Part shown: in pieces, positions 3,101-41,183 of the stretch
How positions within the stretch are numbered: the stretch's first letter is position 1
Layout of the letters: each line of letters begins with the position of its first letter
DNA from: Oopsacas minuta
Lineage: Eukaryota > Animalia > Porifera
Direction of reading: 5' to 3'
DNA length: 64,000 bases
Assembly: GCA_024704765.1 (NCBI GenBank)
Contig: JAKMXF010000222.1
Location: 124,001 to 188,000 of the forward strand
Made by a program: the position numbers and the translations under genes
The notes under the pieces: model-generated
What the model saw: the letters and a program-made list of their open reading frames with translations, nothing else
Told to the model about the DNA's origin: nothing
Database searches by the model: none

Positions 3101-4121
3101 ATTCTTAGACGCGATGCGAGATAATCCAGAAGCAGCTGTTCACATGTTCGAGAATGTACATGAGAACCCTGAGCTTATTTGGAACGATGAAGCTAGGAAC
3201 AAAGTGTCAGCTACAATAGCTCAAATGGTTGTTAAGGTCAATGCAAGACAACAAGAAGATCCGTTAGCTGTGTGGAGACTACCAGAAGATTTCACTGTGG
3301 CTTATTCTGATATAGAGGGTGAGGTAGAAGTAGGAGGAGTATACCTACGTTTATATATAAACCAGCCCTCCTGGGTGTTACGCCGTCCTAAAGAATTTCT
3401 AATCGCGATTTTAGACAAATTTTGTCTTTTATGCGACATGTTAAGTCCAGATGGTCAGGTCTTAGAGATGGTGACATCATCATTAAAATGTTTCTTAATT
3501 CATCATACAGCACTTGCTGATCAGATTCCTCCGTTAGGGCATATTCCGCGGATTTTCACACTTATGACGCCGAAAAATTCCGCGATTAACAAATCATGTG
3601 TAGAGGTAATCCTCCCTATGACAGATTCAGAAGTTTGTGTGCGTACAATCGCGAAATGTAAATGTATAGACCCGTTAATAACCGCAATGAAGACACGAAA
3701 TGACATCATACTCCCTGCCAATGAAGTGCTAGCTCAAATGCTAGATAGAAATATCTCGGAATTAGTATCACAAGCTCTAGACGTAGGCTTAGTGCATTAT
3801 CTCCTCGCTCTGCTAGAGAACTCGTTAGAAAACGTAGATAATGTCGGAGCAGTGAAAGCACAGATGGTCAAGGTGTTAAAGGCAATGGCACAAGATTTAT
3901 CATACGGACAACGTGTTACAGAGATTTTAGACAGCTCACCAATATGGAGCATATATAAAGAACAAAAACATGACCTATTCTTAACAGACACAAGAGTATC
4001 TGGATATTTAACAGGCCCAGGCGTAGCAGGTTATCTTACTGCCCCTACAGTTAGTAATAAAACAATGAGCTCAGCTCCACCCCCACTTGTTCCACCAGAT
4101 GACCAAGACCACCGTGATTAA
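122..4121 (+). CDS. DNAJC13: DnaJ homolog subfamily C member 13 / RME-8, 5'-partial; exons 122-466 and 529-4121
   Basis: GYF-like segment (EWYYGNKDKERLGPF...WAQGLDGWKPL), then after a 62-nt GT-AG intron the frame reads SRDVDNAIIRPLPK...MEDNPQLPRIF. J-domain with HPD (KYHPDKNP) and the RME-8 C-terminus. Upstream exons lie outside the window. Confidence 0.96.
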
Positions 4122-4658: not shown

Positions 4659-7600
4659 ATGGCCCAGTATCAACCTAGTGCTTATAGAATTGGATCACTC
4701 GCCCAATCAGTGTTTACGAATAAAATATCAGACATCGATTCTATAAGAAATCCCTTATCTCTACGATCATATCACATACCAGCCAAGAGTATTAAGACAT
4801 TTGAACCTCAGGATTATGAACACAATCCCCCAAATGTTGAGCTAGTTATCAACAAGTCTAATTCTGAAATATGTTTATCTGAGTTAGATTACCCAAGATT
4901 TTCAGGTTAGAATTCAATTATTTCTATATGTTACTTATAAGTATAATAATCCATTCTTTAGATAATATTCAAGATTCAGATTATCCATCAAGCTGTACAT
5001 GCTGGGATGAAATGACGTCACCACGATTAAACGCATACAGCTGTAACACTATTGGATTAATAGATGATGGAAATGATTCGCTGGAGAGTGGGATAGGAGA
5101 AGTTGACTATGAATCTGATGTATTTGAAGCTGGGATGGATGAAAGAGGAGATTTTGAAGAAATAGTAGAAGTATTGAATGATAAACTTGTAATTTCACCA
5201 ACAAGTTCCACTGAAGTATGTTTTATTAATAACCTAGCATAGCGGTTCCCAGCGCAGATCTAGCTATGAAAATGCTTCCCTGGTGCTGTACTTTTTTAAT
5301 ACTTATTTTACATAGACAAAGTTACTATCACGATCCAGCAGCACACAATCATATAATTCTCTAAAATATACTACATCTATTATACTACCATCTCATAAAC
5401 ATGCTGACGTCACAAGACAAATCCCATTCTTCAAACAATCTATGTTCTATAAGTTCCCACCTACTATTAACTTCCCATTACCTAACGAATGTATAGACCA
5501 TATTCCTGCTAACATAGAAACAGTGTTGAAATGGAGGCCTTCTACTATTACGCCTGTAGTTGTGAAGTCGTGTATAGCGAAAGCTGGCTTTAGGTGAGTT
5601 AATCGCTGTGTTAGAACAATAAGAATTTATTTTACGTAAATATTCCTCTCAGGATGTCAAATAGCAAGGACTGGATAGGATACTTCGGAAAACACATGAA
5701 AGCAGCTACATTCAAGAGTATAAAACCATTTCAGAAGGTTAACCATCTACCTGGTAGCTTCCATATGGGTAGGAAGGATAGCATGTGGAAAAGTATTATC
5801 AGAATGCAGGCTAGATTCTCTAAAAAAGAATTTGACTTCGTACCTCAAACATTTATACTTCCGGCAGAGTATGAAGCTTTCAAGCATGATTATGAGAGTA
5901 AAGGTTCTAAAGCTAGATGGATAATGAAGCCGCCTGCTAGCGCTAGAGGTTAGCTAAACTCTTACCCTTCCTATTTGTTATTAGTATTTAACCATGGATG
6001 GTGAATTTGGTTACTCTGCTTGGGTTGTCGCTTGTTTAGAGGGATATTTGTATATAGCATAAATAACAAATCTAGTATCCATGGTTCAATAACTAATAAC
6101 ATATAGGGGTGACTATTTATGATAATAACAAATCTCTATATTTGACATAAATTATTCTATAGGAATTGGTGTACAAATGGTGAAAAAGTTCAATTTAGTT
6201 CCTCGTAACCGTTCAATACTAGTACAGCAGTATATATCTAATCCAATGCTTATTAACGACAGTAAATGTGACCTCCGTATCTACGTGTATATCACATCTA
6301 TGGACCCCCTGCGTCTGTATATTTATGACGATGGACTTGTACGTTTCGCTACTGTAAAATACTCAACCGCGACTAGACACTTATCAAACCGGTTTGTACA
6401 TCTCACTAACTATTCAGTTAACAAGAAAAATAAAAACTTTCAAGCTAACACAGATGAGACTGTGAGACAAGGACATAAATGGGGATTGAAAGCTCTATGG
6501 CCGTATCTAGCTGAAAGGTAAGTTTCCCCTATATATGCTTATTAGATACTAAACCATGGATGGCGGACTACTCGCTTGGTTGGAGGGGGATATCTATATA
6601 CCTTAAAATAAACCAAATCGACCATTCATGGTTAGATATCTAATAACCATATAGTGAGATCATTTTAACCAAAAACTCAATAACTAATTCATTTCATACT
6701 TAATAGTAGTTTTAGCTGCGTATAGTTCTGCTTCTTTAAGGAAAGTTCCTAGTATAAGTCCTACCTCGCTTTGTGATAAACTTATCTGCTTTTCAATTGC
6801 GTTTCTGAGCTCGTCTTTGATAGATTTCGTTTTCTGCCTCGTACTTTTCGGTAGAATATTTAATTTAACTTTTCCTTCATTAATAATACACATTAGCTCC
6901 TCCAATAAATCTACATTGAAAAGATATTTGATAAGATTTGGGTAATTGAACTGTTCCATACTTCTGACTAGATCAATAACTTTGGTGAATGTTTGTTGCT
7001 GGTTATGCCATGCATACTGAATCAGTACAATCAAGCCTCCTAATATAGTTTGATTGGGTACATTAACCAATTTACTGTCAATAATCGCGATTGTTAAGTG
7101 TACCATATATGGTATCAAATCTTCGCTTCTAGTGCGTAGCAATGAGAATGTAGTTTTCCTATTAGAAGCTTTGTAGACAGCTGGTGGGCAATATTGGTAA
7201 TTACAGTGATTTAGAATATCTTTTAGAACTTTTGTAATACCAAATCCTGCTGCATCAATTCCCCCTCTCTGTAGCAAACAGAGATTTCTTTGTATCTCAA
7301 TACGCCATGCAAGTGCTTTGTTCAAATTATCCTTATTACGAGATTCTTCGTACTGTAGCCGTCCTAGAGCTTCAGTGAAGTTTAAGTGGTATGTATGCAT
7401 ATCCGCGAGGAATAAATTTATCCAATGCCATTCTTCTATACCCCATTGTTGTATTATACGTTGAAATTCACTTTTATATGTTTCGCTTGAATGAAGGAAT
7501 TGCCAGCATTTCGACGCAGCCATCAAACACTCACGAATTCTAGCTTCTTGAACTTCAAAACTCTGATTTAAATCGAACTCCATCGTTTCAGGTTTAAGAT

Positions 7601-9904
7601 TTAACTGATCTGTGTGTGGATGTGCTATTATAACCAGAAATGCTGGATAAGAGTTTGTACTATCTCCTGCGATTCTTAACACGTTCTCATAATACTCCCA
7701 AGCTGTTTGGAAGAACAATAGAACAGCTATGTAGAAAGATCCAATAGCAACTTGTAGTGATTTCTTATTAGATATTTCTTCAAGAGCTTGCCATCTAACC
7801 ATTGGCTGTTGTTTTGTACTCAGATTGATATTACCAACTATTTCAGGCCATTGGCATTTTTTCGCGATAAGGCATAACAATTCGTATAGCTTACTCCATC
7901 CATTTTCCGCGAATATTGCGTCATCAATTTCTTTACGGAATAGAATTTCTGTACCAATCGTGTAGAAATTAGTTGATAGCTCTAACCATTGACAAAAATG
8001 TCCAGTTTTTAAACTAATATTCTGTTGCTGTTCTGCTCGTATAATCGGTTTGTCTACGATAATATCGTTACAAGCAAGAAGTTTAGGAATAATATCACAA
8101 ACTAGGATCTTTTTAAACGGATTTATAAGAACGTCCGTGTTTACAGTGGATGCTCCTTTAGCTAGAATATCCAGAGCTTCTAGTCCATACATAGAAGTAG
8201 TCTCAGGGAATAGCGTCATAAGAGCTAGCAGTATCTGTGACTTACTCATGAGATCTTCAACCTTATTAGCGGCTTCTCTAAGCGCCTGTTTTTGTGTTTC
8301 AACCGGAAGTTGTAGGAATACATCCCTAAAAGTATCCTTTGGTGGATCTTGTGATAGTAGAGTTAGCGCGATACCTTCTAAGAATTCCCATAACTCTGGT
8401 TCTTCAGGAAATTCCCGTATTATATACTCGAGGTATTTTCTAGCACCAATTAAGTCATCACAGGATTTATATAGGAACAGTGTTTTGAGTTGAATTGTGA
8501 AATTACCTGCGAAAAGCGTAGAAGCGGTTAATATCCACGATTTAGCCCCATTTCTATCTCCCTTATACAGACAACGATCGCATTTATCTAATATATTCAT
8601 TATAGTAGGATCCATTATTTATCTTCTCTCTCCGAAATTGCTATAATCTCTGCTCTCCTAGCTCGTATCTTCTCTATTTTTTCTTGTGCTAGACGCTCGT
8701 CAATATTAAATATCCTACTGGTGAATAACGGTGTGAATAAGCCAATAGTCATAAGAGTGAATGCAAGGAATAGTTTCGCTCTCTGCCTAGGGTTTTCAAA
8801 CATTAGCTAAAAGTTGTGCAAAAATTATTAATTCGGTAAAATATGCTAAATACAGACAAATCAAAACAGTCACTCCCTGTTATACCAAACATAGATATAA
8901 TAGAAACACCTGCTAATATCAAAGTCTTAAATTGTACAAATATGGTCCCAAACCGTCAAAGTAACATAATTTACATCGGTTATTTCGAAGTAATTATCGC
9001 TGTCCCTTGGGCTTTGATGTAACAGGAGTTGACTGTATTATTATATAATGCACTATCCCAGAGGTGTAGATTCAGATAAAGTTTGGAGAGATATAAAAGA
9101 GTTAGTATTAAAGACGATAATAGCATCTGAGAATTACATAAACAGTCAAATAAAGGCTAATGTAAGAAACAAAGAGTGTGTATTTGAGCTGTTTGGATTT
9201 GATGTTATGCTAGATGATAAGTATAAACCTTGGCTAATAGAGGTTAACATCTCTCCAAGGTGAGTGTAAATATATATACGTATATATATTTTTTCGCGAG
9301 TGTTAACTCGTATTTAACTTGTATTATATATAGTTTACATTCAACCTCTGGGCTTGATTTGAACATTAAAGGTCCTATGCTCTGTCATGTATTAAACCTA
9401 ACTGGATTTAGAATACCCAATCAGCACTGGGATAGAATTCCCCTCACGAACGATGAAAAATCGAAGCATGCCCATTTCATGAGTGCTTGTCCTCATGAAG
9501 AAACTTCCTATATGAATTCTATACTTGAAACACTTACACCGGATGATATGAGAATGATTATTGAGACAGAAGACGAGTTCACACGAAAGGGGAGTTTTCA
9601 GTTAGTTTTCCCAATCTCTCAGACAATTCCTCACCTAAAATACTTCTCAATACAGAGGTATTACAACTTACTATTACATGCTTGGTTCTCTAATCCTCAT
9701 TACAAGGCTGGAAGAGGTATTTCTATGTTGAGAGAATTTGCTAGACAGGGTATACCTTTTAAAACGCAACCACCTCTCATGCACGTATGGACACACAAGC
9801 AAAGATCTCTCATTAAACCGTTGACTTTATCACCCAAAAAATACAAATTACCAACTTTAACTGGGGCGAAAGCTAAAAAGAAGAAAGTTCCAAAACTCAA
9901 ATAA
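4659..9904 (+). CDS. TTLL4: Tubulin monoglutamylase TTLL4-like, multi-exon; 2.5-kb intron 6518-9061 hosts two antisense genes
   Basis: Exon translations match the TTL domain: [82 protein letters not shown]. Splicing 6517/9062 joins LAER-GVDSD in frame. The start at 4659 is inferred. Confidence 0.9.
5965..6117. mobile_element. Family A element in a TTLL4 intron
   Basis: Inverted repeats tatttaaccatggatgg ... atccatggttcaata, plus core cgcttgtttagaggg and tail taggggtgac. Confidence 0.75.
6526..6675. mobile_element. Family A element directly 3' of the INTS10 stop
   Basis: Same inverted repeats, core ctcgcttggttggagggg and tail. Confidence 0.78.
6684..8615 (-). CDS. INTS10: Integrator complex subunit 10-like, intronless, nested antisense in the TTLL4 intron
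   Basis: 643-aa [22 protein letters not shown] and [16 protein letters not shown] resemble the recalled INTS10 motifs AKAWLITARSLYPADFNIQ and NCFRKLFVCDVLPLII. Confidence 0.8.
   Translation of the reverse strand: MDPTIMNILDKCDRCLYKGDRNGAKSWILTASTLFAGNFTIQLKTLFLYKSCDDLIGARKYLEYIIREFPEEPELWEFLEGIALTLLSQDPPKDTFRDVFLQLPVETQKQALREAANKVEDLMSKSQILLALMTLFPETTSMYGLEALDILAKGASTVNTDVLINPFKKILVCDIIPKLLACNDIIVDKPIIRAEQQQNISLKTGHFCQWLELSTNFYTIGTEILFRKEIDDAIFAENGWSKLYELLCLIAKKCQWPEIVGNINLSTKQQPMVRWQALEEISNKKSLQVAIGSFYIAVLLFFQTAWEYYENVLRIAGDSTNSYPAFLVIIAHPHTDQLNLKPETMEFDLNQSFEVQEARIRECLMAASKCWQFLHSSETYKSEFQRIIQQWGIEEWHWINLFLADMHTYHLNFTEALGRLQYEESRNKDNLNKALAWRIEIQRNLCLLQRGGIDAAGFGITKVLKDILNHCNYQYCPPAVYKASNRKTTFSLLRTRSEDLIPYMVHLTIAIIDSKLVNVPNQTILGGLIVLIQYAWHNQQQTFTKVIDLVRSMEQFNYPNLIKYLFNVDLLEELMCIINEGKVKLNILPKSTRQKTKSIKDELRNAIEKQISLSQSEVGLILGTFLKEAELYAAKTTIKYEMN
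8615..8803 (-). CDS. 62-aa single-pass membrane microprotein, weakly SMIM20/MITRAC7-like
   Basis: One hydrophobic stretch followed by a charged helical tail. Its TAA overlaps the INTS10 ATG (TAATG), and its own ATG is preceded by ttttag-cta. Confidence 0.5.
   Translation of the reverse strand: MFENPRQRAKLFLAFTLMTIGLFTPLFTSRIFNIDERLAQEKIEKIRARRAEIIAISEREDK
8865..9038. mobile_element. Family B MITE in the TTLL4 intron, upstream of the nested gene pair
   Basis: tgtacaaatatggtcccaaaccgtcaaagtaacat...gaagtaattatcgc...ggagttgactgta. Confidence 0.75.
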
Positions 9905-24072: not shown

Positions 24073-24828
24073 CTATACCTCCACATAAATATCCTGTGTC
24101 TCTCGACTACGTAGACACATAACACAATAACTAAGTACTACTCCAGTAATCTCAAAGAGTGCCAGGAGTATAGCAACCGAAATGAGAATAGCTCCCCACA
24201 TTTCTACTGTGTTGAAGAACAATTCAACACACCCAACTTGATAAATATCAGAATATTGTATGCAGAAGTCATAACTTGATGTCGAATTGTCCCCACAACA
24301 GCTAAGGGGTGTAATCGCGTTATCATATTTGTTGTTAATCCACGATACATCTTTCCAGTCATCTGGTCCGTATGCACCACAACAAAGCAGGCTTTGTTGG
24401 ATATTATCAATCGCCTCGGTTATGGCATCGTCACTTTGGTATTGATATTGATCCATATTAGCTAACATAGCGAATCCCATTTGCTCATAGATATCACTAC
24501 GGAACACTACAGCTAAAATCCCACCGATTATTTGTACAACTAAAACTATTATCAGTAGAATATTGTATGTTAGGAGAATGCTAGAATTAGCGCAGACGGC
24601 CCCTATAATACCCAGAAACCCCAGAACAATAAGCAGAACTCCGCACAGACCGATTACAATAACAGGTACTACAATATACACAGCGCTTGTAGTGTTAAGG
24701 AATATGTCATAAGTACGCGAGGCTATGAAAAAATCAGCTGCTACGTAGAGTAGGATCCCAGCTATCACCCAAAGTAGAACATTGAAGATTACCAGTAAGA
24801 TTGCAAATAGTATTCGCCAGAAACCCAT
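24073..24828 (-). CDS. Tetraspanin, intronless
   Basis: Four hydrophobic segments; large extracellular loop with CCG and PLSCC motifs and a GC before TM4. Confidence 0.92.
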   Translation of the reverse strand: MGFWRILFAILLVIFNVLLWVIAGILLYVAADFFIASRTYDIFLNTTSAVYIVVPVIVIGLCGVLLIVLGFLGIIGAVCANSSILLTYNILLIIVLVVQIIGGILAVVFRSDIYEQMGFAMLANMDQYQYQSDDAITEAIDNIQQSLLCCGAYGPDDWKDVSWINNKYDNAITPLSCCGDNSTSSYDFCIQYSDIYQVGCVELFFNTVEMWGAILISVAILLALFEITGVVLSYCVMCLRSRETQDIYVEV

Positions 24829-25460
24829 TTCTATATGGTATGTAGACTAGAACTAATATTTGTGTATGAATCTATTAATAATAATACTAAGTGGTTATAA
24901 TCAAATATATACCTACGAAATTGCCTAATGCACGAAGGCTTATTACAACAGAAAAGAATCAGATAACTGCTAGAACCCCATACAAATGAGTCATTCCTCA
25001 TCTGTTGGTTTCCATGTTATATATTCAATATGCTACTGATTGTTTGTTTGTTTGTTTGGGACTTTAACATGCACTTGACAGGCTCTTGATAACTTATATG
25101 GTTGTGTTATGCAGCATTTATAAATATTTGTAAATATTAATAATATGCGTATATCGAACCTCCTCTAACGGGCCTGTGGAAACGAGGAACTTATGGAAAC
25201 GGAGTGAAAAAATAAAACAAAAATTCCTGGTCCCATACGAGAGAACCTGCACAAATGGGGAATTTGGCAAAACTGGGAAACGGGGCAGCATTTTTGGCAT
25301 CCCTGAAGGTTACATAGTATAAAACCCCCATGGGTAGTCAAAACGAATGGACAAGTTCTTCCAAATATATTCATATATGATAAAACTGAGCCATGAAATA
25401 TTGTCAAATAAATTAAAAATATAGCAAACTATATGTAAAATCCGAAATACAAAACTATTA

Positions 25461-26866
25461 CTACCTTTTCTTCCGTGGTTTCAATTCTTCATCAGCTTTT
25501 CGTAAGAAAATATAATTCTTTTTGCTTGGATCGAATTTCTCATGCCCTTTTGACCAATCATAACTAACTGCATAGCCGAAAATCTGTCCAGTAAAATTAA
25601 AATCACAAGAAACAATAGGTTGTGTCATTTGTTCAGAAGTTTTAAGCTTAGTACGAGCGTTTTTATCCCAGTAGCTGAACTTATTATCAGAGCCAACAGT
25701 AGCTAATGTTCCATGTACAGGGTGTACTGATATATCATTAACGACATAAATATCCTGTATTTGTGAGGTATTTTGCGGCGGAGCTGACCTATGGCATTTA
25801 AATGTGAAATTATCTACACTAGGATTAGGTGTGTTTATATAATGTATAGCAACACGGCCTTCAATAGAACCTAATGCGAATCCAGAAGGTTTATCTTTAT
25901 CAGAGAATATACTCACACAGCGGTGTTGGTATTTGAGAGGGGAATCAATCTGTTTTAATAAAGCAGGTGTGTTTTCTAGGTTGTAGAGTATTACTCCTCG
26001 ATTAGCTGTCCCAACAACACAAAGTGGGAAAACCTATGGAAAACCGTGATTAGTATTTAATTAGTTGAAATACTAATCAGCCAATAGGAATTTAACCGGA
26101 TTAAAAGTCGTTGAAAAACAGATTTTGTTTTATGAGAGACCGTATATATATGTGGGTACAGTGAAATCTCCACAGACGAGGCCTGTGGAAACGGAGTGAA
26201 AATTAAATAGAGAGAATCAACAGTCCCTTAAAATGAACCTACACAAACGGGGGAATTTGGATTCTCGGCGTCCCTGACACCCCGTTTGTGGAGGGTACAC
26301 TGTATAAGTAAAACTGACCACATCAGTACAATAACATCTCTCCGGTAGCTGAATAGAGAGCTGAGGCGTAGAGCTTCTCGTGTCCCAGAACTTCAAAGTC
26401 TTATCCCATGATCCAGTCATTAGACAGCTATAAGATTTCCCTTCTATCCAATGTACAGACTTGATAGGGCTCTCATGCATTGCTACATTCATTGACTGGT
26501 TAGTAGCGAGATCCCATATTTTAGCATAGTTGTCACATCCAACTGTAAATGCCTTTGTTCCGTCCTAGGAACAGCGTATTAAGTAGTGCATAACTTGCGC
26601 AAATTATATGCAAGATTTCGTCAACATACCGAATGCCAGCAGCATGACAACGCAGGTCCCTCATGTGCTATCTGGGCCTTCAATACAGAACCAGTATCAG
26701 CTATTTCCCAGCATCTAACTGTATTATCCCAAGAGCTACATAGTATATAGTTAGCATTTGGAGAGAATTTGATCATGCTGATAGAGTCATCCGGGCAGTT
26801 AGGTAACTCCACGTCCTTCATAGGGTTGTGATTAGTAAGGAGATTTCCAAAATTCATGCCTGTCAT
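25461..26866 (-). CDS. RAE1: mRNA export factor RAE1/Gle2, multi-exon
   Basis: [56 protein letters not shown]. Confidence 0.95.
26157..26304. mobile_element. Family C MITE in a RAE1 intron
   Basis: tacagtgaaatctccacagacgagg ... ccccgtttgtggagggtacactgta. Confidence 0.82.
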
Positions 26867-26975
26867 CCACCTGCAACTAATGATCAATCAATACAATAAT
26901 ATGTAACACTAATTAGATAAAGGAGAAGTAATTGAATTTTAGAATTGTTTAATAATTAGCCCATAATTTCTACTG

Positions 26976-27632
26976 TCACTCTTCATAATAGAAAGGTTTT
27001 TCTGAGTTGAAATAATTAAGAAATTGCCAACGAGTTGACTTTAGCGGTGAGAGAGGTGGGATGCCTTGGAAAGGTCTTGTGTAAGAGTAGCACTGATCGA
27101 AAACAGAATCTATTATTTCCCTAGCTTGGTCATAACTAACTCCTTCCTTTACTGTAGAAATAGATTGAGCCGCGCGGTGTTTCACACATTCGCGATTATG
27201 AGATTTGAAACCAAAATTGAAACGTATAAAGTTTTCTTTCGAAAAGGAGCATTCACCACTCAAATTCGCTGCCCTTACCTCAGTACAAGCTAAATGTTTC
27301 AAATCATGCCAATCCAAATTTACGGACTTGTCATCAAACGAATGTACCAATTCATGTGTCAGAACTTCATTCATATGTATCTGCGAATAGATATTATTTT
27401 CGCAAAGAACAATTTGTTGTCGACGAGGATCGAATCCACCAGCTACCCTAGGCGAACAAGGTTCACAGGCAAAATCTCTTGAAATTTTGACTGGAAATCC
27501 AGCCTCATGCATTGATATCAACATGTGTATTACAGTGGGATCAGTTTTGATGCTGCGTGCGAACCGTGTGAGACAAGTGCTATGGGAACGTGGGTCAGTA
27601 GAAGTATATTCTGTGGATACATCTTCACCCAT
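26976..27632 (-). CDS. ATP23: Mitochondrial inner membrane protease ATP23
   Basis: Metalloprotease motif HELVH, plus AGGFDP and HLACTEVRAANLSGEC. Start at MGEDV is inferred. Confidence 0.92.
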   Translation of the reverse strand: MGEDVSTEYTSTDPRSHSTCLTRFARSIKTDPTVIHMLISMHEAGFPVKISRDFACEPCSPRVAGGFDPRRQQIVLCENNIYSQIHMNEVLTHELVHSFDDKSVNLDWHDLKHLACTEVRAANLSGECSFSKENFIRFNFGFKSHNRECVKHRAAQSISTVKEGVSYDQAREIIDSVFDQCYSYTRPFQGIPPLSPLKSTRWQFLNYFNSEKPFYYEE

Positions 27633-27805
27633 AATGGCTATACAGTGAAAAATTGAGAATGAAGAAACCAATTGGATAGTATAGAGGTAACGTTCATATT
27701 TTTCAATTTTTGATAAAATTCTAAATCGTGATACGTTGTTCCCCATATGATTGTGAAAGGGTAGATAAATGAACACGAATTAATTAACCGATCGCTACGC
27801 TTCAA

Positions 27806-29035: not shown

Positions 29036-32000
29036 TTAATCATCTTTGGACAGCTGGGAGTATTGGTGGGTTGGACTCTCAGTCTCCTTTTCTTTTTCAA
29101 CAATATCATCAGATGCGAGAAGACTTTCGTAGGCCTTTCCATCACCACTCTTCTCTGGAGTCTTAGACACAACTGCGTAGCGTTCCTCAGTTGCTACATC
29201 TTGTTTCGCAGTTTCTTTATCTAAGTCCACTTGCTTTGGTGTTTCATAAGCAGGATTAGTTATAGCTGTGTTTTCCTCTTTTGTTAGATCGCCGCTTTCT
29301 TTGGCTTTTGATGGCATCGTGTATTTTCCGGAAATACCACCTGAAGTCTGAGAAGATGGTGGAAGATCGGCTCTTCTTCTGAATATAACTTCTTGTACCT
29401 GAGCATTCCGCAATACAACCAAAAAGAAGAATACCGCACCTGTAGGTGCTGTCAGAAGAATCGTAACCCATTCGATAATCGTTGTTGCTACTAAAGAGGT
29501 AATAAATACGTTTATAATACCGAGTATCCATGGAATGCTTAGAATGGGCAATAGAACAATAATTGCTAATGCTGTTTTCTTTATTGCATCAAACTCATCA
29601 ACTTTATCTCCCTTCGCTCGAATTGTGAGGAATATTTTGATTATTGAAATAATTGCTGCAACAGTTGTTACTACCAGTAAGAGAATGAAAGGCACAAAGA
29701 AACCCCACAATAAACCATTATTATACGATAAGAAGCAATGGTCACCAATAACGACATAATCATTTCGAGATAGACCTACAGCAGCGGTAATAATCACAAT
29801 TGGTAATGGTAGACCCCAGCCTATGATCATCATAGCCCACCAAATTCGTCGTCTCTTGAACACACCAATGTAAAGGATGTATATCATAAATATAGAGATA
29901 GCAAAACTCCATGAAAATACACTCAGCCAGAAATAATGCAATAGGAATGCAACAATGCTACAACCAGCTATCGAGTCTCTCGCTGTTTGGATACCAAAGA
30001 TGAACACACTTGTGGCCAATGCCATCGAGAAAGCATAGTTAAAATAGAGAATGTTGATTTCAACTTTGAAGAACTTTTTCGCAGCTATTAAAAAGAATAT
30101 GATGGAAACAACTAAGAATATGAGTGAGATAGACAGCAATATATAAGATATGATAGAGAGAGCCAGAGTTTCCGCAGGAGTAATAAAGAATTCTTGGGCA
30201 CGAATTAACACACCGAAACTAGTCGTGTGTTCAGGCATGCAAGATGTCAAACCGTTGTCAATTATCTCCGTCCTAATATCAGCAACAAAAGCGTTTGTTA
30301 TTGGATCGATGAACGAACATTCCTGAATGGCTGTATTTATATCTGGTGATTCAAAAATGATATTTGGTGGATTATCCGAAAAGTCTCGCCTCTGGTTTCC
30401 ATTAACAAAGACACTCAGGGCAACGAGGACAGTGTTCAATTCTGGGGTTGTGGTGAGCTCATCTTCTTGGTCTCTTGTAAGAGGACTTGATATTCTAGCA
30501 GTTGCGACACCAACTACGTCTACAAATAGAGGAAATAGCATAATATTCACTATTCTGTGAATATCATATCGTAACAAATGAAGTACTGGGAATAATATTT
30601 CATACTTACCAGTTGATTCAAAGTCGTTCCCAATAGTTACAGACTCTCCTGAGGCGACATCTAAAGAGATATCTTCATTTGGTTGTGGTTCAACCAGCAT
30701 AGCTCTAATTATGATATTCGGGGAATTTATTACTCTGGTCTCTCCAGGGTCTAACTGGTTGACTATATTGTTAGATATGTCCTCCGCGCCTCTTGCTTGT
30801 AATCCTACGGCAGCAGGTACTGAGAGCGGCATCATCACATCAGGATTTACAGGTACATCAGCTGGAAAAATTTATATAATAATATTCAATGTCTATTATA
30901 AATGAAGAAGGCATTGGAAAAGTACAAAATATATTTTATGGATATTAACTCACGTTCTACTACTAATCCTCCAATATCTCCAAGCAAAAGCAGCAAGCTT
31001 TCTGCTTCTCCATCTGTTATATTTCTATTAGGATTAGCAACACTATCAACTATTAAAGCTGCTACATTCAATAATTGACTTGCTTGTTCGGTGCTATTCT
31101 GTACTGAATCAATCCCAATTAGAGACTCTGCTACCTGTAGAAAGAGCAAAATAACAAAACATTCTGTATTTGAGTATTAATGCTAAAGCACACTACTTAC
31201 AGATATTAATCCCAGAGCAACCTCAGGAGTCAATGGTTCATCCAGAGGTATATTATTGATAACGTCTAAAGTTGCTTCCACAGATTGGACTGTTACTATT
31301 ACTGTTGCAGACACGACTCCAGCTGGATTAGTTGCAATACATTGAAATTCGAATATGCCAATGTTCGTAGCATTGAATATAAGATTATATACATCACCAA
31401 AATCAGAATTTTCGAAGAATTGTGTTTGTAGCCCATTATTGTTAACGATATTTACTTCTACATCAGTACCGGTTGCGGTGCAAGGATATTCCAAAAGTGT
31501 TCCCTGTGTCCAAGTAAGGGTTTGCTGTGGAAATGAAACTATAGGGGCTAAATGAAACAGACAAATTTATAGATTTTGAAGTTCACGTAAGACGTATCAG
31601 TCAAGATGGTTTTTTCATACTCGGGTTTTCTTACTATATTTTCATGCTAAGATTGTAAGAATGTGGAAATAACAGATTTCAACTATTTCTATGCAGGAAA
31701 TATATGAAATCCTACATTTTTTCGATCTGAGCAAGAAAATTATTAAGAATAAACAGGAGTCAAACGTATTCAAAAGGAACATACGGTCTATAGGTGTGAC
31801 AGTGACCAACGTAGATGTTGGAGTAGAAATTGAGGGAGTAGGAGTTCCAGTAGTGTTAACTGGGATCACAAAGTCTCTACAATACGGTAGTCTGTTATTG
31901 TAAACCACAGCTGTGTTTAAAATGTAGAAGGATTCAGGGTAAAGGTTGAGAAATATAGTACATAGGTTAGTGTCAGTTTCAATCCTTGCAGCCTAATAGT

Positions 32001-35000
32001 AGGGAAAAAAAGATTTCAAGAAGAACTTACTAAAAAGTTTTCAATTAGTTTGGTTCATAAATAATACACTTACAATGACGTTTGATGTTGAGAAGCTACA
32101 AGTTCTTTGTGCTGCAATGTTATTGTACAAACTATATATAGAGAAACTGCATTGACTCCCAGGGTATGCACCACAGCCATAATAATAGTCATAATTGTAT
32201 GAAGGGGAATTTCCATTATTACTTTCACCATCAAAACAGTCATAATTGTATCCGTAATATGTTACAAATGACAATGGTGCTGGTGGACCGTATGAATCCC
32301 CACAACCTTGAGGGGGATCGAATAGCAATGTATAGTAGACACCTATTGGATAACACAAATTTAAGAATTATTCAATATTAATTCATTTCTAAATTATCTT
32401 AATTTTGAATACTGAACTCACTCAGAGATAGAATTCCATCCAATAAGTAACCATTTGGTAAGTAGATATTTTGTGTGACATTCCGTATAGCATCTATTGA
32501 TAGACTTTGTTCGATTTGATCAATTACATAAGGTGGTATATCGATGGTGACATTCGATGCCAGTGATGGCAGAATAGAATCTATGAGTTGTCTGATGGAA
32601 TCTTCATTCAATGCTTCTCCGTGGTAAAATGTTAAAGAGTGTGAATATGTCAACGAGGAGTGGTATAACGTCACAATTATCAATTGTCTAGAAAGGAAAT
32701 ATACAGACAAAGAGTTATATGTAAATACTAATATTGATACTATTGCAATGCATACCTCGTTAACAAATGTTATAACATCGAAGCTAGAGATTGAATCGAG
32801 TGTACCTTCAATTACAAAGAGAAGATCGTCTCTTAAACTGTTAAACTCATATTCAAATTGTTCAGAGTTAATGTATCCAACAGTCAGAATCACAACACTG
32901 TCCAGAACATCACTGAAATCTTGTAATGATTGAGCTAGAATCGCAGTACAATACACCAGAGTATCAGCACAGAGGGCTAGAAGGGAATACAATACGTGAA
33001 TAATTACACTATATTTCCTGTTAAAGAATACAAATAACTTTCTACTTACATTGACAATATCGTCGTTCAGATTGATTTTGACCTATCAAAGGACAGACCA
33101 GATTGGCAAGGATTGCGTCTACACATAAAGTGGCACCTTCACTCGATGGAATTGCATAACGTAGCTCGTTGAATTTGTTTTCGAATAGGTAAGACTGACT
33201 GAATACTTGAAGAATGGGGCGAATAATGCTCATCCTTTGAGGCTATATTTGGAAAGTGAAATAGTAAGTATACCATCATGTCAAAAGAAATTATATTCTA
33301 AGAATATTTGTACTCTAAAATTACTTACCAAATCTTGTAAAACTTCCAAGTAGCCTATAATATCCTGAATATTGTCATTAAGCAACAGTTCAGTCAGTAC
33401 ACAAGTGATATTTTCTTCTAACCCAGGAATATTCAATACCTCAGAGATTGTGTAAAGTATTTGTTCTACCCCAGTGTCATTTCCAACGATTTCCCCAACG
33501 ATTTCTAGTCCTAGATCTGTTCCATCCCAGTAATATCCTTACTAGATTTCTAGCTCTTACTTCAGGGTACATACTACAAATAACATGGATATATAATAAA
33601 ATAGTTGCGACCGGTCAAAGTGGATCTTTCAATCCTAAACTAATACACACCTGAAGTTCTGGTGTAGCTCATAGAATAAGTCATCAATGAGGTTAAATAT
33701 CTCTGGATAGTATGGCTGTAGGACTTCATCATTAACTCCACCCAAATATGTCAAAGCAGGAGATAGAGTTGCATTCAGTAATTGTCTCAATGCAGCTGGA
33801 TCACCTTCAGCTATGTCATCTGAATATTAGATTTGTAAATGGTGATGTTTTTTGATTGTATACAACATTTCAATATTTATGACACTTACCTACAAAGTCT
33901 GAAACGCTCGTGCCAATAGTAGCTACAGTCTCTGTTGTATCTAGAATGTACTCAGTACCTTCTATTACATCATATGTGACAACAGTACGAATAGCTTGAT
34001 CCTCTGTGCATTCATTTGTAACGCATGTTATTGGTTGAATTAAGAAGTCTCGAACAATATGGAAGTCTATTATTGTAATCGATCCCATTTCTCAAGATTT
34101 CAATCGATTCAGGATAAAGTGATAGGAATACTGAACAAAGATTCGTGGGTGTATATATTGTTGCATTCTAAAATGTACAATAAGTTAGTGTACTCTGATG
34201 TAATTATGAAAGAAAAATTGCAGTCGACATCTGCTATCTCGAGCATTTCATATTCTTCCCGAAAAATTCCAGCCTTTACGTGACTATTTTGAAATTCTCA
34301 TATTCACAAATTGTAACCATACCACTGTCCTCAAACCGTACCCCGCAGCTATGAACATATGTCCTACCACCTGGAACTATGGGCTACAGGGCCATAGCAC
34401 GCTCGTGAAAACCTGTCAGGCTGTGGCAGGACGGCCGGACAAAAGGCTACGACCATGTATTGCAAATAGTTACAGTATTGACACATAACTTAGTTTTTGT
34501 TCAGCTTCCACGAATCGAGTAAAATACAATTTGTTTGCATTAATTGGAGGCCATAAATTAACACGAACATTGGCTATCTGGAATATATTTTGATTTCCCT
34601 TGAAGTTTCGGGTTCCCTGATGTTGACTATAGTTGTTTCATAAATAATATACTTACAATGACGTTTGATGTTGAGAAGCTACAAGTTCTTTGTGCTGCAA
34701 TGTTATCGTACAAACTGTATATAGAGAAACTGCATTGACTCCCAGGGTATGCACCACAGCCATAATAATAGTCATAATTGTATGAAGGGGAATTTCCATT
34801 ATTACTTTCACCATCAAAACAGTCATAATTGTATCCGTAATATGTTACAAATGATAATGGTGCTGGTGGACCGTATGAATCTCCACAACCTTGAGGGGGA
34901 TCGAATAGCAATGTATAGTAGACACCTATTGGATAACACAAATTTAAGAATTATTTATTGATTTTATTCCAATATTTTATTCGTAATATTTTTTAAATAT

Positions 35001-38000
35001 ACTGAACTCACTCAGAGATAGAATTCCATCCAATAAGTAACCATTTGGTAAGTAGATGATGTTTTGTGTGACATTCCGTATAGCATCTATTGACAGACTT
35101 TGTTCGATTTGATCAATCACATAAGGTGGTATATCAATGGTGACATTCGATGCCAGTGATGGCAGAATAGAATCTATGTGTTGTCTGATGGAATCTTCAT
35201 TCAATGCTTCTCGTGGTAAAATGTTAAAGAGTGTGAATATGTCAACGAGGAGTGGTATAACGTCACAATTATCAATTGTCTAGAAAGGGAATATACAGAC
35301 AAAGAGTTATATGTAAATACTAATATTGATACTATTGCAATGCATACCTCGTTAACAAATGTTATAACATCGAAGCTAGAGATTGAATCGAGTGTACCTT
35401 CAATTACAAAGAGAAGATCGTCTCTTAAACTGTTAAACTCATATTCAAATTGTTCAGAGTTAATGTATCCACCAGTCAGAATCACAACACTGTCCAGAAC
35501 ATCACTGAAATCTTGTAATGATTGAGCTAGAATCGCAGTACAATACACCAGAGTATCAGCACAGAGGGCTAGAAGGGAATACAATACGTGAATAACTACA
35601 CTATATTTCCTGTTATAAATTGCAAATAACTTTCTACCTACATTGACAATATCGTCGTTCATATGGAGGTTGATCTATCAAAGGACAGACCAGATTGGCA
35701 AGGATTGCGTCTACACATAAAGTAGCACCTTCACTCGATGGAATTGCATAACGTAGCTCGTTGAATTTGTTTTCGAATAGGTAAGATTGACTGAATACTT
35801 GAAGAATGGGGCGAATAATGCTCATCCTTTGAGGCTATATTTGGAAAGTGAAATAGTAAGTATACCATCATGTCAAAAGAAATTATATTCTAAGAATATT
35901 TGTACTCTAAAATTACTCACCAAATCTTGTAAAACTTCCAAGTAGCCTATAATATCCTGAATATTGTCATTAAGCAACAGTTCAGTCAGTATACAAGTGA
36001 TATTTTCTTCTAACCCAGGAATATTCAATACGTCAGAGATTGTGTAAAGTATTTGTTCTACCCCAGTGTCATTTCCAACGATTTCCCCAACGATTTCTAG
36101 TCCTAGATCTGCTCCATCCAGTAATACCCTTACTAGATTTCTAGCTCTTTCTTCAGGGTATATACTACAAATAATATGGATAAATGATAAATTTGTTTGG
36201 TAACCGGTCAAAGTGAATATTTCAATCCTAAACTAATACACACCTGAAGTTCTGGTGTAGCTCATAGAATAAGTCATCAATGAGGTTAAATATCTCTGGA
36301 TAGTATGGCTGTAGGACTTCATCATTAACTCCACCCAAATATGTCAAAGCAGGAGATAGAGTTGCATTCAGTAATTGTCTCAATGCAGCTGGATCACCTT
36401 CAGCTATGTCATCTGAATATTAGATTTGTAAATGGTGATGTTTTTTGATTGTATACAACATTTCAATATTTATGACACTTACCTACAAAGTCTGAAACGC
36501 TTGTACCAATAGTAGCTACAGTCTCTGTTGTATCTAGAATGTACTCAGTACCTTCTATTACATCATATGTAACAACAGTACGAATAGCTTGATCCTCTGT
36601 GCATTCATTTGTAACGCATGTTATTGGTTGAATTAAGAAGTCTCGACAATATGGAAGTCTATTATTGTAATCGATCCCATTTCTCAAGATTTCAATCGAT
36701 TCAGGATAAAGTGATAGGAATACTGAACAAAGATTCGTGCGTGTATATATTGTTGCATTCTGAAAAGTACAATAAATTCGAGTAGTTAGATGTATAACGT
36801 ATCAGATATTTAAAGACAATATACTTACAATGACGTTTGATGTTGAGAAACTACAAGTTCTTTGTGCTGCAATGTTATCGTACAAACTGTATATGGAGAA
36901 ACTGCATTGAGCCCCAGGGTATGCACCACAGCCATAATAATAGTCATAATTGTATGAAGGGGAATTTCCATTATTACTTTCACCATCAAAACAGTCATAA
37001 TTGTATCCGTAATATGTTACAAATGACAGTGGTGCTGGTGGACCGTATGAATCCCCACAACCTTGAGGGGGATCGAATAGCAATGTATAGTAGACACCTA
37101 TTGGATAACACAAATTTAAGAATTATTTATTGATTTTATTCCAATATTTTATTCGTAATATTTTTTAAATATACTGAACTCACTCAGAGATAGAATTCCA
37201 TCCAATAAGTAACCATTTGGTAAGTAGATGATGTTTTGTGTGACATTCCGTATAGCATCTATTGACAGACTTTGTTCGATTTGATCAATCACATAAGGTG
37301 GTATATCAATGGTGACATTCGATGCCAGTGATGGCAGAATAGAATCTATGAGTTGTCTGATGGAATCTTCATTCAATGCTTCTGGTGGTAAAATGTTAAA
37401 GAGTGTGAATATGTCAACGAGGAGTGGTATAACGTCACAATTATCAATTGTCTAGAAAGGGAATATACAGACAAAGAGTTATATGTAAATACTAATATTG
37501 ATACTATTGCAATGCATACCTCGTTAACAAATGTTATAACATCGAAGCTAGAGATTGAATCGAGTGTACCTTCAATTACAAAGAGAAGATCGTCTCTTAA
37601 ACTGTTAAACTCATATTCAAATTGTTCAGAGTTAATGTATCCACCAGTCAGAATCACAACACTGTCCAGAACATCACTGAAATCTTGTAATGATTGAGCT
37701 AGAATCGCAGTACAATACACCAGAGTATCAGCACAGAGGGCTAGAAGGGAATACAATACGTGAATAACTACACTATATTTCCTGTTATAAATTACAAATA
37801 ACTTTCTACCTACATTGACAATATCGTCGTTCATATGGAGGTTGATCTATCAAAGGACAGACCAGATTGGCAAGGATTGCGTCTACACATAAAGTAGCAC
37901 CTTCACTCGATGGAATTGCATAACGTAGCTCGTTGAATTTGTTTTCGAATAGGTAAGACTGACTGAATACTTGAAGAATGGGGCGAATAATGCTCATCCT

Positions 38001-41000
38001 TTGAGGCTATATTTGGAAAGTGAAATAGTAAGTATACCATCATGTCAAAAGAAATTATATTCTAAGAATATTCGTACTCTAAAATTACTCACCAAATCTT
38101 GTAAAACTTCCAAGTAGCCTATAATATCCTGAATATTGTCATTAAGCAACAGTTCAGTCAGTATACAAGTGATATTTTCTTCTAACCCAGGAATATTCAA
38201 TACGTCAGAGATTGTGTAAAGTATTTGTTCTACCCCAGTGTCATTTCCAAGGAATTCCCCAACGATTTCTAGTCCTAGATCTGCTCCATCCAGTAATATC
38301 CTTACTAGATTTCTAGCTCTTTCTTCAGGGTATATACTACAAATAATATGGATAAATGATAAATTTGTTTGGTAACCGGTCAAAGTGAATATTTCAATCC
38401 TAAACTAATACACACCTGAAGTTCTGGTGTAGCTCATAGAATAAGTCATCAATGAGGTTAAATATCTCTGGATAGTATGGCTGTAGGACTTCATCATTAA
38501 CTCCACCCAAATATGTCAAAGCAGGAGATAGAGTTGCATTCAGTAATTGTCTCAATGCAGCTGGATCACCTTCAGCTATGTCATCTGAATATTAGATTTG
38601 TAAATGGTGATGTTTTTTGATTGTATACAACATTTCAATATTTATGACACTTACCTACAAAGTCTGAAACGCTTGTACCAATAGTAGCTACAGTCTCTGT
38701 TGTATCTAGAATGTACTCAGTACCTTCTATTACATCATATGTGACAACAGTACGAATAGCTTGATCCTCTGTGCATTCATTTGTAACGCATGTTATTGGT
38801 TGAATTAAGAAGTCTCGACAATATGGAAGTCTATTATTGTAATCAATCCCATTTCTCAAGATTTCAATCGATTCAGGATAAAGTGATAGGAATACTGAAC
38901 AAAGATTCGTGGGTGTATATATTGTTGCATCCTAAAATGTACAATAAATTCGAGTAGTTAGATGTATAACGTATCAGATATTTAAAGACAATATACTTAC
39001 AATGACGTTTGATGTTGAGAAACTACAAGTTCTTTGTGCTGCAATGTTATCGTACAAACTGTATATGGAGAAACTGCATTGAGCCCCAGGGTATGCACCA
39101 CAGCCATAATTGTATGAAGGGGAACTTCCATTATTACTTTCACCATCAAAACAGTCATAATTGTATCCGTAATATGTTACAAATGATAATGGTGCTGGTG
39201 GACCGTATGAATCTCCACAACCTTGAGGGGGATCGAATAGCAATGTATAGTAGACACCTATTGGATAACACAAATTTAAGAATTATTTATTGATTTTATT
39301 CCAATATTTTATTCGTAATATTTTTTAAATATACTGAACTCACTCAGAGATAGAATTCCATCCAATAAGTACCATTTGGTAAGTAGATGATGTTTTGTGT
39401 GACATTCCGTATAGCATCTATTGACAGACTTTGTTCGATTTGATCAATCACATAAGGTGGTATATCAATGGTGACATTCGATGCCAGTGATGGCAGAATA
39501 GAATCTATGAGTTGTCTGATGGAATCTTCATTCAATGCTTCTGGTGGTAAAATGTTAAAGAGTGTGAATATGTCAACGAGGAGTGGTATAACGTCACAAT
39601 TATCAATTGTCTAGAAAGGGAATATACAGACAAAGAGTTATATGTAAATACTAATATTGATACTATTGCAATGCATACCTCGTTAACAAATGTTATAACA
39701 TCGAAGCTAGAGATTGAATCGAGTGTACCTTCAATTACAAAGAGAAGATCGTCTCTTAAACTGTTAAACTCATATTCAAATTTTTCAGAGTTAATGTATC
39801 CAACAGTCAGAATCACAACACTGTCCAGAACATCACTGAAATCTTGTAATGATTGAGCTAGAATCGCAGTACAATACACCAGAGTATCAGCACAGAGGGC
39901 TAGAAGGGGATACAATACGTGAATAACTACACTATATTTCCTGTTATAGAATACAAATAGCTTTCTACTTACATTGACAATATCGTCGTTCAGATTGATT
40001 TTGACCTATCAAAGGACAGACCAGATTGGCAAGGACTGCGTCTACACATAAAGTAGCACCTTCACTCGATGGAATTGCATAACGTAGCTCGTTGAATTTG
40101 TTTTCGAATAGGTAAGATTGACTGAATACTTGAAGAATGGGGCGAATAATGCTCATCCTTTGAGGCTATATTTGGAAAGTGAAATAGTAAGTATACCATC
40201 ATGTCAAAAGAAATTATATTCTAAGAATATTTGTACTCTAAAATTACTCACCAAATCTTGTAAAACTTCCAAGTAGCCTATAATATCCTGAATATTGTCA
40301 TTAAGCAACAGTTCAGTCAGTATACAAGTGATATTTTCTTCTAACCCAGGAATATTCAATACGTCAGAGATTGTGTAAAGTATTTGTTCTACCCCAGTGT
40401 CATTTCCAAGGATTTCCCCAACGATTTCTAGTCCTAGATCTGCTCCATCCAGTAATATCCTTACTAGATTTCTAGCTCTTTCTTCAGGGTACATACTACA
40501 AATAATATGGATAAATGATAAATTTGTTTGGTGACCGGTCAAAGTGAATATTTCAATCCTAAACTAGTACACACCTGAAGTTCTGGTGTAGCTCATAGAA
40601 TAGGTCATCAATGAGGTTAAATATCTCTGGATAGTATGGCTGTAGGACTTCATCATTAACTCCACCCAAATATGTCAAAGCAGGAGATAGAGTTGCATTC
40701 AGCAGCTCTGTGAATGCACCTGATTCACCTTCAGCTATGTCATCTGGATATTTAATTTGTAAATAATCATATATTTTGTTTGCAAGCAACAATTCCATAT
40801 TTATGACACTTACCTATAAATTCCCTAACGTTTACACCAATGTTGGCTACAGTCTCTATGGTATCCTTAACGTTCTGTGCTCTATCTATTGCGGCATTAC
40901 GGATGGGAACGCGATCTGCATATTCTGTACATTCGTTTGAGAAACAAAATTCTACTTCTAAAAAAGCGAAATTATAATTATACTAACATATGGTAATTTT

Positions 41001-41183
41001 GTCTACTATTTTTTCTGGAATTTTCAAGCAATTTTGAATTTATTCACCAACAACAAACATTATCAGATTATTTTAAAGTAAGCAACATATGAAAAATATA
41101 ATTATTTAATATAACTCACGTCCAGAACAAATGAATGGCGCTAGGCCAATAAACAATAGTAACAAGTGTTTAAAAACCTGCAT
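29036..41183 (-). CDS. Adhesion GPCR: signal peptide, 4 glypican-like repeats, Thr/Pro stalk, Ig domain, GAIN/GPS, 7TM; repeat 4 carries frameshifts as assembled
   Basis: Manual exon chaining with GT-AG sites. Exon 41183-41120 gives signal peptide MQVFKHLLLLFIGLAPFICSG; four multi-exon modules follow; exon 31992-31785; Ig exon 31547-31201 (YPCTATG...FQCIATNPAG); GPS-like CSF...CMPEHTTSFGVL; then seven hydrophobic helices. The traced junctions join in frame except for 1-nt indels noted under findings. Confidence 0.8.
32074..40957 (-). repeat. Four tandem copies of a roughly 2.17-kb multi-exon module (approx. M1 40957-39001, M2 38931-36829, M3 36759-34657, M4 34167-32074)
   Basis: Homologous ORF fragments recur with a 2172-bp offset between M2 and M3, and both exons and introns are near-identical. 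Confidence 0.95.

Follow-up and report, generated by a model that had tools for sequence, protein, structure and literature searches.

Candidate circularly permuted glypican-like units in the ectodomain of an adhesion-type receptor from the glass sponge Oopsacas minuta

The glass sponge Oopsacas minuta carries a gene whose product is best explained as an adhesion-type receptor, that is, a secretin-family seven-transmembrane (7TM) protein, with an ectodomain built of four near-identical units. These units are best read, at a rough probability of 0.55, as glypican-like domains in rotated order. The single minus-strand gene spans positions 41183-29039 of the window, by which we mean the whole 64,000-nucleotide stretch analysed (contig JAKMXF010000222.1, positions 124,001 to 188,000), and encodes in succession a signal peptide, four modules, a terminal segment with a stalk, an immunoglobulin (Ig)-like exon and a 7tm_2 receptor. 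Glypicans themselves are single-domain co-receptors for Wnt, Hedgehog and other morphogens, attached to the membrane by a glycosylphosphatidylinositol (GPI) anchor. Each sponge unit consists of a cysteine-rich, mostly helical core of about 490 residues, with a cysteine skeleton that parallels the glypican one from C3 (the 'TCC' position) to C12 (the 'CWNG' position), and then a segment of 42 residues with two cysteines, C1 and C2. Relative to a glypican, the order of the elements is rotated: C3 through C12 come first, then C1-C2. The sequence evidence leaves about even odds that the ectodomain strings together glypican folds in circularly permuted form, in which each core would be completed and disulfide-stapled by the segment that follows it.

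Results

Boundaries of the repeating unit

The two ends of the array define its register. As the initial annotation had described, the exon starting at 40957 opens with Q-VEFCFSNECTE, three residues ahead of the cysteines of FC..NEC and without an NLC...LPYC piece, and the exon at 31992-31785 supplies this missing piece (AARIETDTNLCTIFLNLYPES...RLPYCRDFVI) before turning into a threonine-, proline- and serine-rich stalk (PVNTTGTPTPSISTPTSTLVTVTPID). The NCBI models P0010 and P0001 share the junctions at these exons. We looked for an unrecognised exon between 41120 and 40957 that could provide module 1 with an NLC...LPYC segment of its own and found none, the 162-nt intron carrying stops in all three frames. 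Segment-like sequence was likewise absent within 6 kb upstream (best tblastn expect value (E) 0.59), as was a further segment for module 1 elsewhere in the 61.5 Mb genome; intron stops, upstream tblastn and genome search together rule out such a hidden exon. Counting from FC to LPYC gives 16 cysteines (in P0010 at residues 26, 31, 183, 247, 257, 270, 274, 281, 350, 438, 460, 477, 485, 502, 521 and 548), the number reported earlier. The argument once drawn from the evenness of this number does not discriminate between the two parses, as the canonical one (14 cysteines in module 1 and 2 in the terminal piece) gives even numbers too.

A HMMER search with the junction exon returned only P0001 and short exon-sized fragments, which led to six sponge-derived assemblies in the European Nucleotide Archive (ENA), here called species A (L014/L015), B (L011), C (L016), D (L017), E (L018) and F (L019). 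Mapping the Oopsacas exons onto the six contig sets revealed the same gene in all of them. Among proteins of 739-2350 amino acids (aa), a word-based search for relatives returned only the two Oopsacas models, and the single-module homologues that had been proposed as a check were not found by a word-based protein search over 325-1032 aa.

The signal-peptide exon of Oopsacas and of species A, B, D and F has a phase-1 end, and the exon after it reaches C3 within 2-4 residues (QVEFC in Oopsacas, QNNC in A, QTDC in B, ETQC in D and QEC in F); the 64-nt length of this phase-1 exon recurs in species F. At the other end, the final core is followed by one more two-cysteine segment and then by the Ig exon in Oopsacas and in species A, C, D, E and F. 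Between these ends, species C, D and F have an intron and a stalk of 8-40 residues rich in threonine, proline and alanine between each segment and the next core (for example GNATPPIG, GNFSFTTTPFVTSTPPSG, or about 40 residues of threonine/alanine repeats, TTATTATTT...). The stretch from a core to its own segment comprises about 18 ordinary residues and is free of indels. Oopsacas, A, B and E have the segment in one exon with the following C3, and their stretch from C2 to C3 is rich in proline and comprises between 9 and 11 residues.

Given the intron and stalk that come between a segment and the following core in species C, D and F, the repeating unit is in all likelihood the core together with the segment behind it. 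These ends and linkers, compared across assemblies, are the strongest evidence for the unit boundary, with the rotated unit bounded by signal peptide, introns and stalks across seven assemblies, and the folding unit is very probably likewise the core plus the following segment. The opposite assignment keeps the canonical order, with each segment packing on the following core, a first core that lacks a segment and a last segment left as an orphan of array trimming. The exon shared by segment and next C3 in Oopsacas, A, B and E would suit such an arrangement, as would the resemblance of C2-x9-11-C3 to the glypican spacing C2-x5-6-C3. However, up to about 40 residues of mucin-like stalk, together with the intron, separate segment and next core in C, D and F, and on these grounds we rejected the canonical order with frayed ends; moreover, the terminal segment that would be an orphan, and C3 and C6 of the first cores, which would be without partners, are conserved in every species examined. 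We consider this assignment very improbable.

The cassette in species F has phase 1 at both borders, as do the exons for the signal peptide and Ig. Whole units would behave as cassettes of phase 1-1 set between these two exons, and this would be why the copy number differs among species (2 to 6 or more): two units in F, four in Oopsacas, six in A and at least 4-5 in C, D and E.

Comparison with the glypican cysteine skeleton

Oopsacas also has an ordinary glypican gene (L009, G000:C297:16846-20760, at about 1290-3690) with a signal peptide, the full C1-C12 pattern including CWNG, SGxG glycosaminoglycan sites and a hydrophobic GPI-type tail; a second, weaker Pfam glypican match in the genome lies at G000:C33:470639-470830. 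Using the former as reference for the cysteine intervals, with its C7 skipped, we found that 13 of the 14 positions of the glypican skeleton are present in the module, C7 being absent and the order being rotated at the array ends (Table 1). The interval match was equalled in none of 200,000 trials with random placements or shuffled intervals, and the match of the core alone in 0 (random placement) and 4 (shuffle) of 200,000. These trial counts are generous, as skipping C7 and stopping at C12 were chosen post hoc, and this already counts against a glypican reading. Judged by sequence, the long intervals nevertheless agree too closely for chance.

Table 1. Cysteine intervals (residues) of the receptor module and of the glypican from the same genome.
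Interval	Module	Glypican
C1-C2	27	31
C2-C3	10	7
C3-C4	5	1
C4-Cx	153	144
Cx-C5	64	57
C5-C6	10	10
C6-C8	13	12
C8-C9	4	4
C9-C10	7	7
C10-Cy	69	68
Cy-C11	98	64
C11-C12	22	12

Fourteen cysteines recur without change in every unit of every species, as many as in glypicans, C7 being replaced by a new cysteine (RTCSF) near the core end. The two extra cysteines of Oopsacas (Ca and Cb) form a lineage-specific pair, gained or lost together. C1, C2, C3 and C6 are kept in essentially every unit of every species, the first cores and the terminal segments included, and C12 lies within C[FY][DN]G, with CWNG itself in species D. For these comparisons, spliced orthologue modules were used in local alignment, cysteine counting and hhalign. 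The sole hhalign match falls on the cysteine-rich region and puts C8-x3-C9-x6-C10, 'QFE.EF' with 'QFANDF', and Cy in register. On this sequence evidence the core is likely to be a divergent glypican-type domain.

Several further results weigh against a glypican reading. Pfam searches with single exons and whole modules returned nothing glypican at E up to 10, a six-frame genome scan with the Pfam glypican model (PF01153) hit two other loci and not the receptor locus, and phmmer against the PDB found only a chance peptide. The hhalign match is not significant (P 0.017-0.067, probability <3%, with a four-row or ten-row module profile), on profiles that are shallow: the sponge glypican exon query gave only three close fragments, so there was no broad glypican profile to compare with. 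A feature search of the ESM Atlas gave no usable match. With C7 missing and C4', the counterpart of C4, shifted by four residues, the disulfide map cannot equal that of a glypican. Furthermore, species C, D and F do not keep the C2-C3 spacing by which Oopsacas comes close to glypicans, so that what ties the segment to the glypican N-terminus is a two-cysteine piece of similar length and an [LI]PY.C motif. Fold prediction was weak as well: AlphaFold2 on residues 511-1100 of P0010 (module 2 with both flanking segments) reached a mean predicted local distance difference test (pLDDT) score of 34.9 and a predicted template modelling (pTM) score of 0.24, from an input alignment of four near-identical Oopsacas module rows, to which we were confined because the orthologue exon fragments misaligned in MAFFT, stacking unrelated exons, and would provide no covariation across exon borders. 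The two segment copies scored alike (31-47 vs 33-42). A complex of core 1 and segment 1 in ESMFold2 had a score of 0.00 and yielded no model, which speaks neither for nor against contact. Finally, for three of the four assembly frameshifts at the locus the assembly is the only source, and the near-identical modules make contig placement ambiguous.

These points raise the prospect that the module is not glypican kin, being instead another member of the Frizzled-CRD/NPC1/folate-receptor superfamily (CRD, cysteine-rich domain), or a sponge-specific fold with a convergent CX3CX6C, in which case the permutation would lose its reference point. Beyond the missing Pfam, PDB and HMMER matches at E up to 10 and the non-significant hhalign result, the CX3CX6C motif is common to the whole superfamily (PMC4256011). 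On the other hand, 9-12 consecutive cysteine intervals over about 480 residues agree with the glypican of the same genome, the long ones (153/144, 64/57 and 69/68) are absent from other CRD families, C12 sits in a glypican-like motif that in species D is CWNG itself, and helical secondary structure is predicted throughout the core, albeit by a weak AlphaFold2 model. We therefore judge an origin outside the glypicans improbable. The earlier claim of a folding unit made of a glypican core and the former N-terminal segment thus stands as to its boundaries, given the ends and linkers across assemblies, and holds in part as to its glypican-like nature, where the cysteine spacing is collinear and Pfam, PDB and HMMER give no match.

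Placement of the segment

If the core is a glypican-type domain, the segment may occupy the site of the glypican N-terminal piece. In the glypican-1 structure C2 is bonded to C6, a pair that is printed ambiguously in the paper that gives the other pairs. That paper places C1-C3, C8-C12 and C9-C11 within one lobe (PMC4256011). From a chain end in this cysteine-rich lobe, the segment can therefore reach the place that it normally takes, and we propose that the segment folds back on the cysteine-rich lobe of its own core and would be stapled there as in glypicans, through C1-C3 and C2-C6. The new cysteine near the core end, Cc, probably stands in for the lost C7 as partner of C4', and such a Cc-C4' bond would place the chain end beside C3. 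The parsimonious pairing that leaves no cysteine free would then comprise C1-C3 and C2-C6 inside the unit, and C4' with the new cysteine.

Alternatively, the segment could be a self-closed connector (C1-C2), with C3 paired to C6 in the core, so that the unit would be a truncated glypican-like core with a new C-terminal knob and no permutation at all. Cysteine parity fits this arrangement equally well, sequence C-terminal of the segment is linker-like in C, D and F, neither fold prediction (mean pLDDT 34.9; score 0.00) was good enough to show contact between segment and core, and the C2-C3 spacing varies. However, an autonomous connector needs two glypican disulfides to be rewired while all four cysteines are kept; the stretch of about 18 residues between core and segment is conserved, non-linker and without indels; and the segment, with its 26-27 residues between the cysteines and its [LI]PY.C motif, is similar to the piece with which the sponge's glypican begins. 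A self-closed connector is, on balance, unlikely, if the most credible of the alternatives considered here. A true structural circular permutation, with the segment at the site of the glypican N-terminal piece, has in our estimate an even or slightly better chance of being correct.

Expression and annotation of the locus

The four modules lie in tandem, each with seven exons in about 2.2 kb, and are 98-99% identical, introns counted in. Divergence from the internal copies is confined to the first 47 codons of module 1 (42% aa identity) and the terminal exon (66%); the terminal segment 4 is 66% identical to the internal segments and 56% identical to the terminal segment of species A. The seven-helix domain belongs to the secretin family (PF00002 7tm_2, E 1.8e-27, 96.6 bits vs a cut-off of 20.6). 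Directly ahead of its first transmembrane helix (TM1) we spotted by eye a GPS-like motif, C..C.PEHTT/SFGVL (CMPEHTT/SFGVL); the Pfam GPS and GAIN models have no match in the receptor (GPS cut-off E 0.01). Coordinates of all features are collected in Table 2.

As assembled, the reading frame is broken in modules 1 and 4. In module 1, one nucleotide is missing near 39371, which leads to a TGA at the end of exon f, and module 4 carries +1 at 34053-34055, +1 at 33526-33528, +1 at 32619-32620 and -3 near 32469. Four sequencing runs of one sample cover the locus, and their contigs were placed on 33460-39459. Runs X1-X3 are Illumina DNA contigs with Nextera adaptor tails, and run X4 behaves as RNA. 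In all three Illumina DNA runs the contigs lack the additional T at 34053, and we therefore attribute the frameshift at this position to an assembly error. Joints with GT..AG on the minus strand were seen in run X4 alone, at every predicted intron within 33460-39459; the gene is expressed with the predicted splicing. One such joint, 34167/34657, splices module 3 onto module 4, so that both NCBI models are one gene. P0010 (LOD99_678, 'hypothetical protein', 1613 aa) comprises the signal peptide together with modules 1-3, and P0001 ('G-protein coupled receptor', 1343 aa) runs from module 4 through the C-terminus. The public annotation splits the gene in two because of the assembly indels in its near-identical repeats. 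At the split, LOD99_678 ends in an intron read-through, VSILFMKQL, and the 'G-protein coupled receptor' model starts with the artefactual MGSITIIDFHIV.

Run X4 placed 4417 contigs on the 6 kb of 33460-39459, a third of them only 95-99% alike. This excess suggests either that the gene is expressed at a very high level, with contigs that derive from errors, or that there are more variants of the module than are present in the assembly. A 461-nt insertion at 34190-34650 is confined to the intron that separates modules 3 and 4. Pieces of about 50-90 nt of it recur with 76-92% identity on at least six other contigs, which marks it as a dispersed repeat; ARAGORN found no tRNA in it.

Table 2. Features of the receptor gene in the window.
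Feature	Position	Strand	Remarks
Signal-peptide exon	41120..41183	-	MQVFKHLLLLFIGLAPFICSG plus 1 nt; 64 nt, ends in phase 1; start agrees with NCBI model P0010
Intron, 162 nt	40958..41119	-	stops in all three frames; without coding potential for the NLC...LPYC piece
Core of unit 1, 7 exons	39001..40957	-	first residues QVEFC.SNEC, equivalents of C3 and C4'
Segment 1 (DATIYTPTNLC...LPYCRDFL; C1 and C2)	38806..38931	-	lies in one exon with the beginning of core 2
Core of unit 2, intact	36829..38805	-	every intron backed by RNA joints
Segment 2	36634..36759	-	
Core of unit 3, intact	34657..36633	-	
Segment 3	34041..34167	-	extra T at 34053-34055 in the assembly
Core of unit 4	32074..34040	-	assembled with +1 at 33526-33528, +1 at 32619-32620 and -3 near 32469
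Terminal segment 4 (AARIETDTNLC...LPYCRDFVI)	31864..31992	-	
Threonine/proline/serine-rich stalk	31785..31863	-	same exon as terminal segment 4; exon ends in phase 1
Ig-like exon	31198..31547	-	end coordinate approximate
Exons with GPS-like motif CMPEHTTSFGVL and seven-helix domain	29039..30871	-	Pfam 7tm_2

Further features of the orthologous loci

Species A, C, D, E and F share the downstream neighbours Peptidase_M76 (ATP23-like), WD40 (RAE1-like) and tetraspanin, which lie at 24076-27779 in the window. An annexin-like gene stands upstream of the receptor in species A and F. Two diverged unit types, X and Y, alternate in species D (L017:1438-4650 and 7182-9610), and the pair as a whole seems to have been duplicated. 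Type X is marked by C3-x6-C4', by CWNG at its C12 and by a segment that has diverged strongly (AIDLC...LLTC). In species E, a 715-aa open reading frame (L018:12640-14787) that encodes a RAG1 RNase-H-like domain (PF26100) lies in the intron that parts the last core from its terminal segment; it is probably a Transib-type transposon. In species B, modules at L011:8100-16000 are present as mirror-image inverted copies that score identically on the two strands, most likely an artefact of long-read assembly, and the exon at 7758-8030, beside the inversion point, is without C1 (NLH).

Discussion

Compared to glypicans (PF01153), the receptor unit has in common 14 conserved cysteines with collinear spacing from C3 to C12, a two-cysteine piece of about 30 residues with an [LI]PY.C-like motif, the C12 motif and a long core predicted to be all-helical. 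It differs in that it has no hidden Markov model (HMM) match, has lost C7, gained a new cysteine near its end and shifted C4', and carries the two-cysteine piece behind the core rather than ahead of it. Moreover, the receptor units are without Ser-Gly glycosaminoglycan sites and a GPI signal, being followed instead by the threonine/proline stalk, the Ig-like exon and the 7TM domain, and they occur in two to six or more tandem copies within a receptor ectodomain. With adhesion G-protein-coupled receptors (GPCRs) the protein shares the 7tm_2 domain, a GPS-like motif before TM1, an Ig exon and a mucin-like stalk, whereas glypican-like ectodomain repeats set it apart. In our literature search we found no paper on an adhesion GPCR with glypican-like repeats or on a permuted glypican.

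Swaposin, compared with saposin and prosaposin, is the textbook case of a circular permutation that arose from tandem repeats, and represents a single excised unit. The sponge receptor resembles this system in its tandem disulfide-rich helical domains, whose shifted register yields a permuted unit; the fold is unrelated, and in the sponges the array itself is conserved in the shifted register. The group that unites the Frizzled CRD, NPC1, the folate receptor and glypicans (ECOD, PMC4256011) shares with the module the CX3CX6C core pattern and a cysteine-rich lobe that ties both chain ends. The CRDs of Frizzled, NPC1 and the folate receptor comprise 120-250 residues, whereas the sponge module has, as is typical of glypicans, a long helical extension and an extra Cx-Cy pair.

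An origin of the array by duplication and trimming, as put forward in the initial annotation, is a reasonable hypothesis. Either of two routes yields the same array, namely trimming of a canonical tandem array at both ends or duplication, as a phase 1-1 cassette, of one unit in which the permutation had already taken place. The fused junction of Oopsacas, A, B and E and the split junction of C, D and F cannot be ordered in time without a species tree.

If the proposed reading is true, the sponge units would be the first glypican-type domain known outside GPI-anchored proteoglycans and a living example of the path to circular permutation in which tandem duplication is followed by a shift in register. 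For protein evolution, they would provide the natural, conserved array in shifted register that the duplication model demands, with the gene structure marking the borders of the unit. On the practical side, the public Oopsacas annotation presents this single gene as two products. A glypican cysteine skeleton repeated and rotated in a 7TM receptor of an early-branching animal group would widen the known uses of the fold, and a type of domain that binds morphogens would be tied directly to G-protein signalling.

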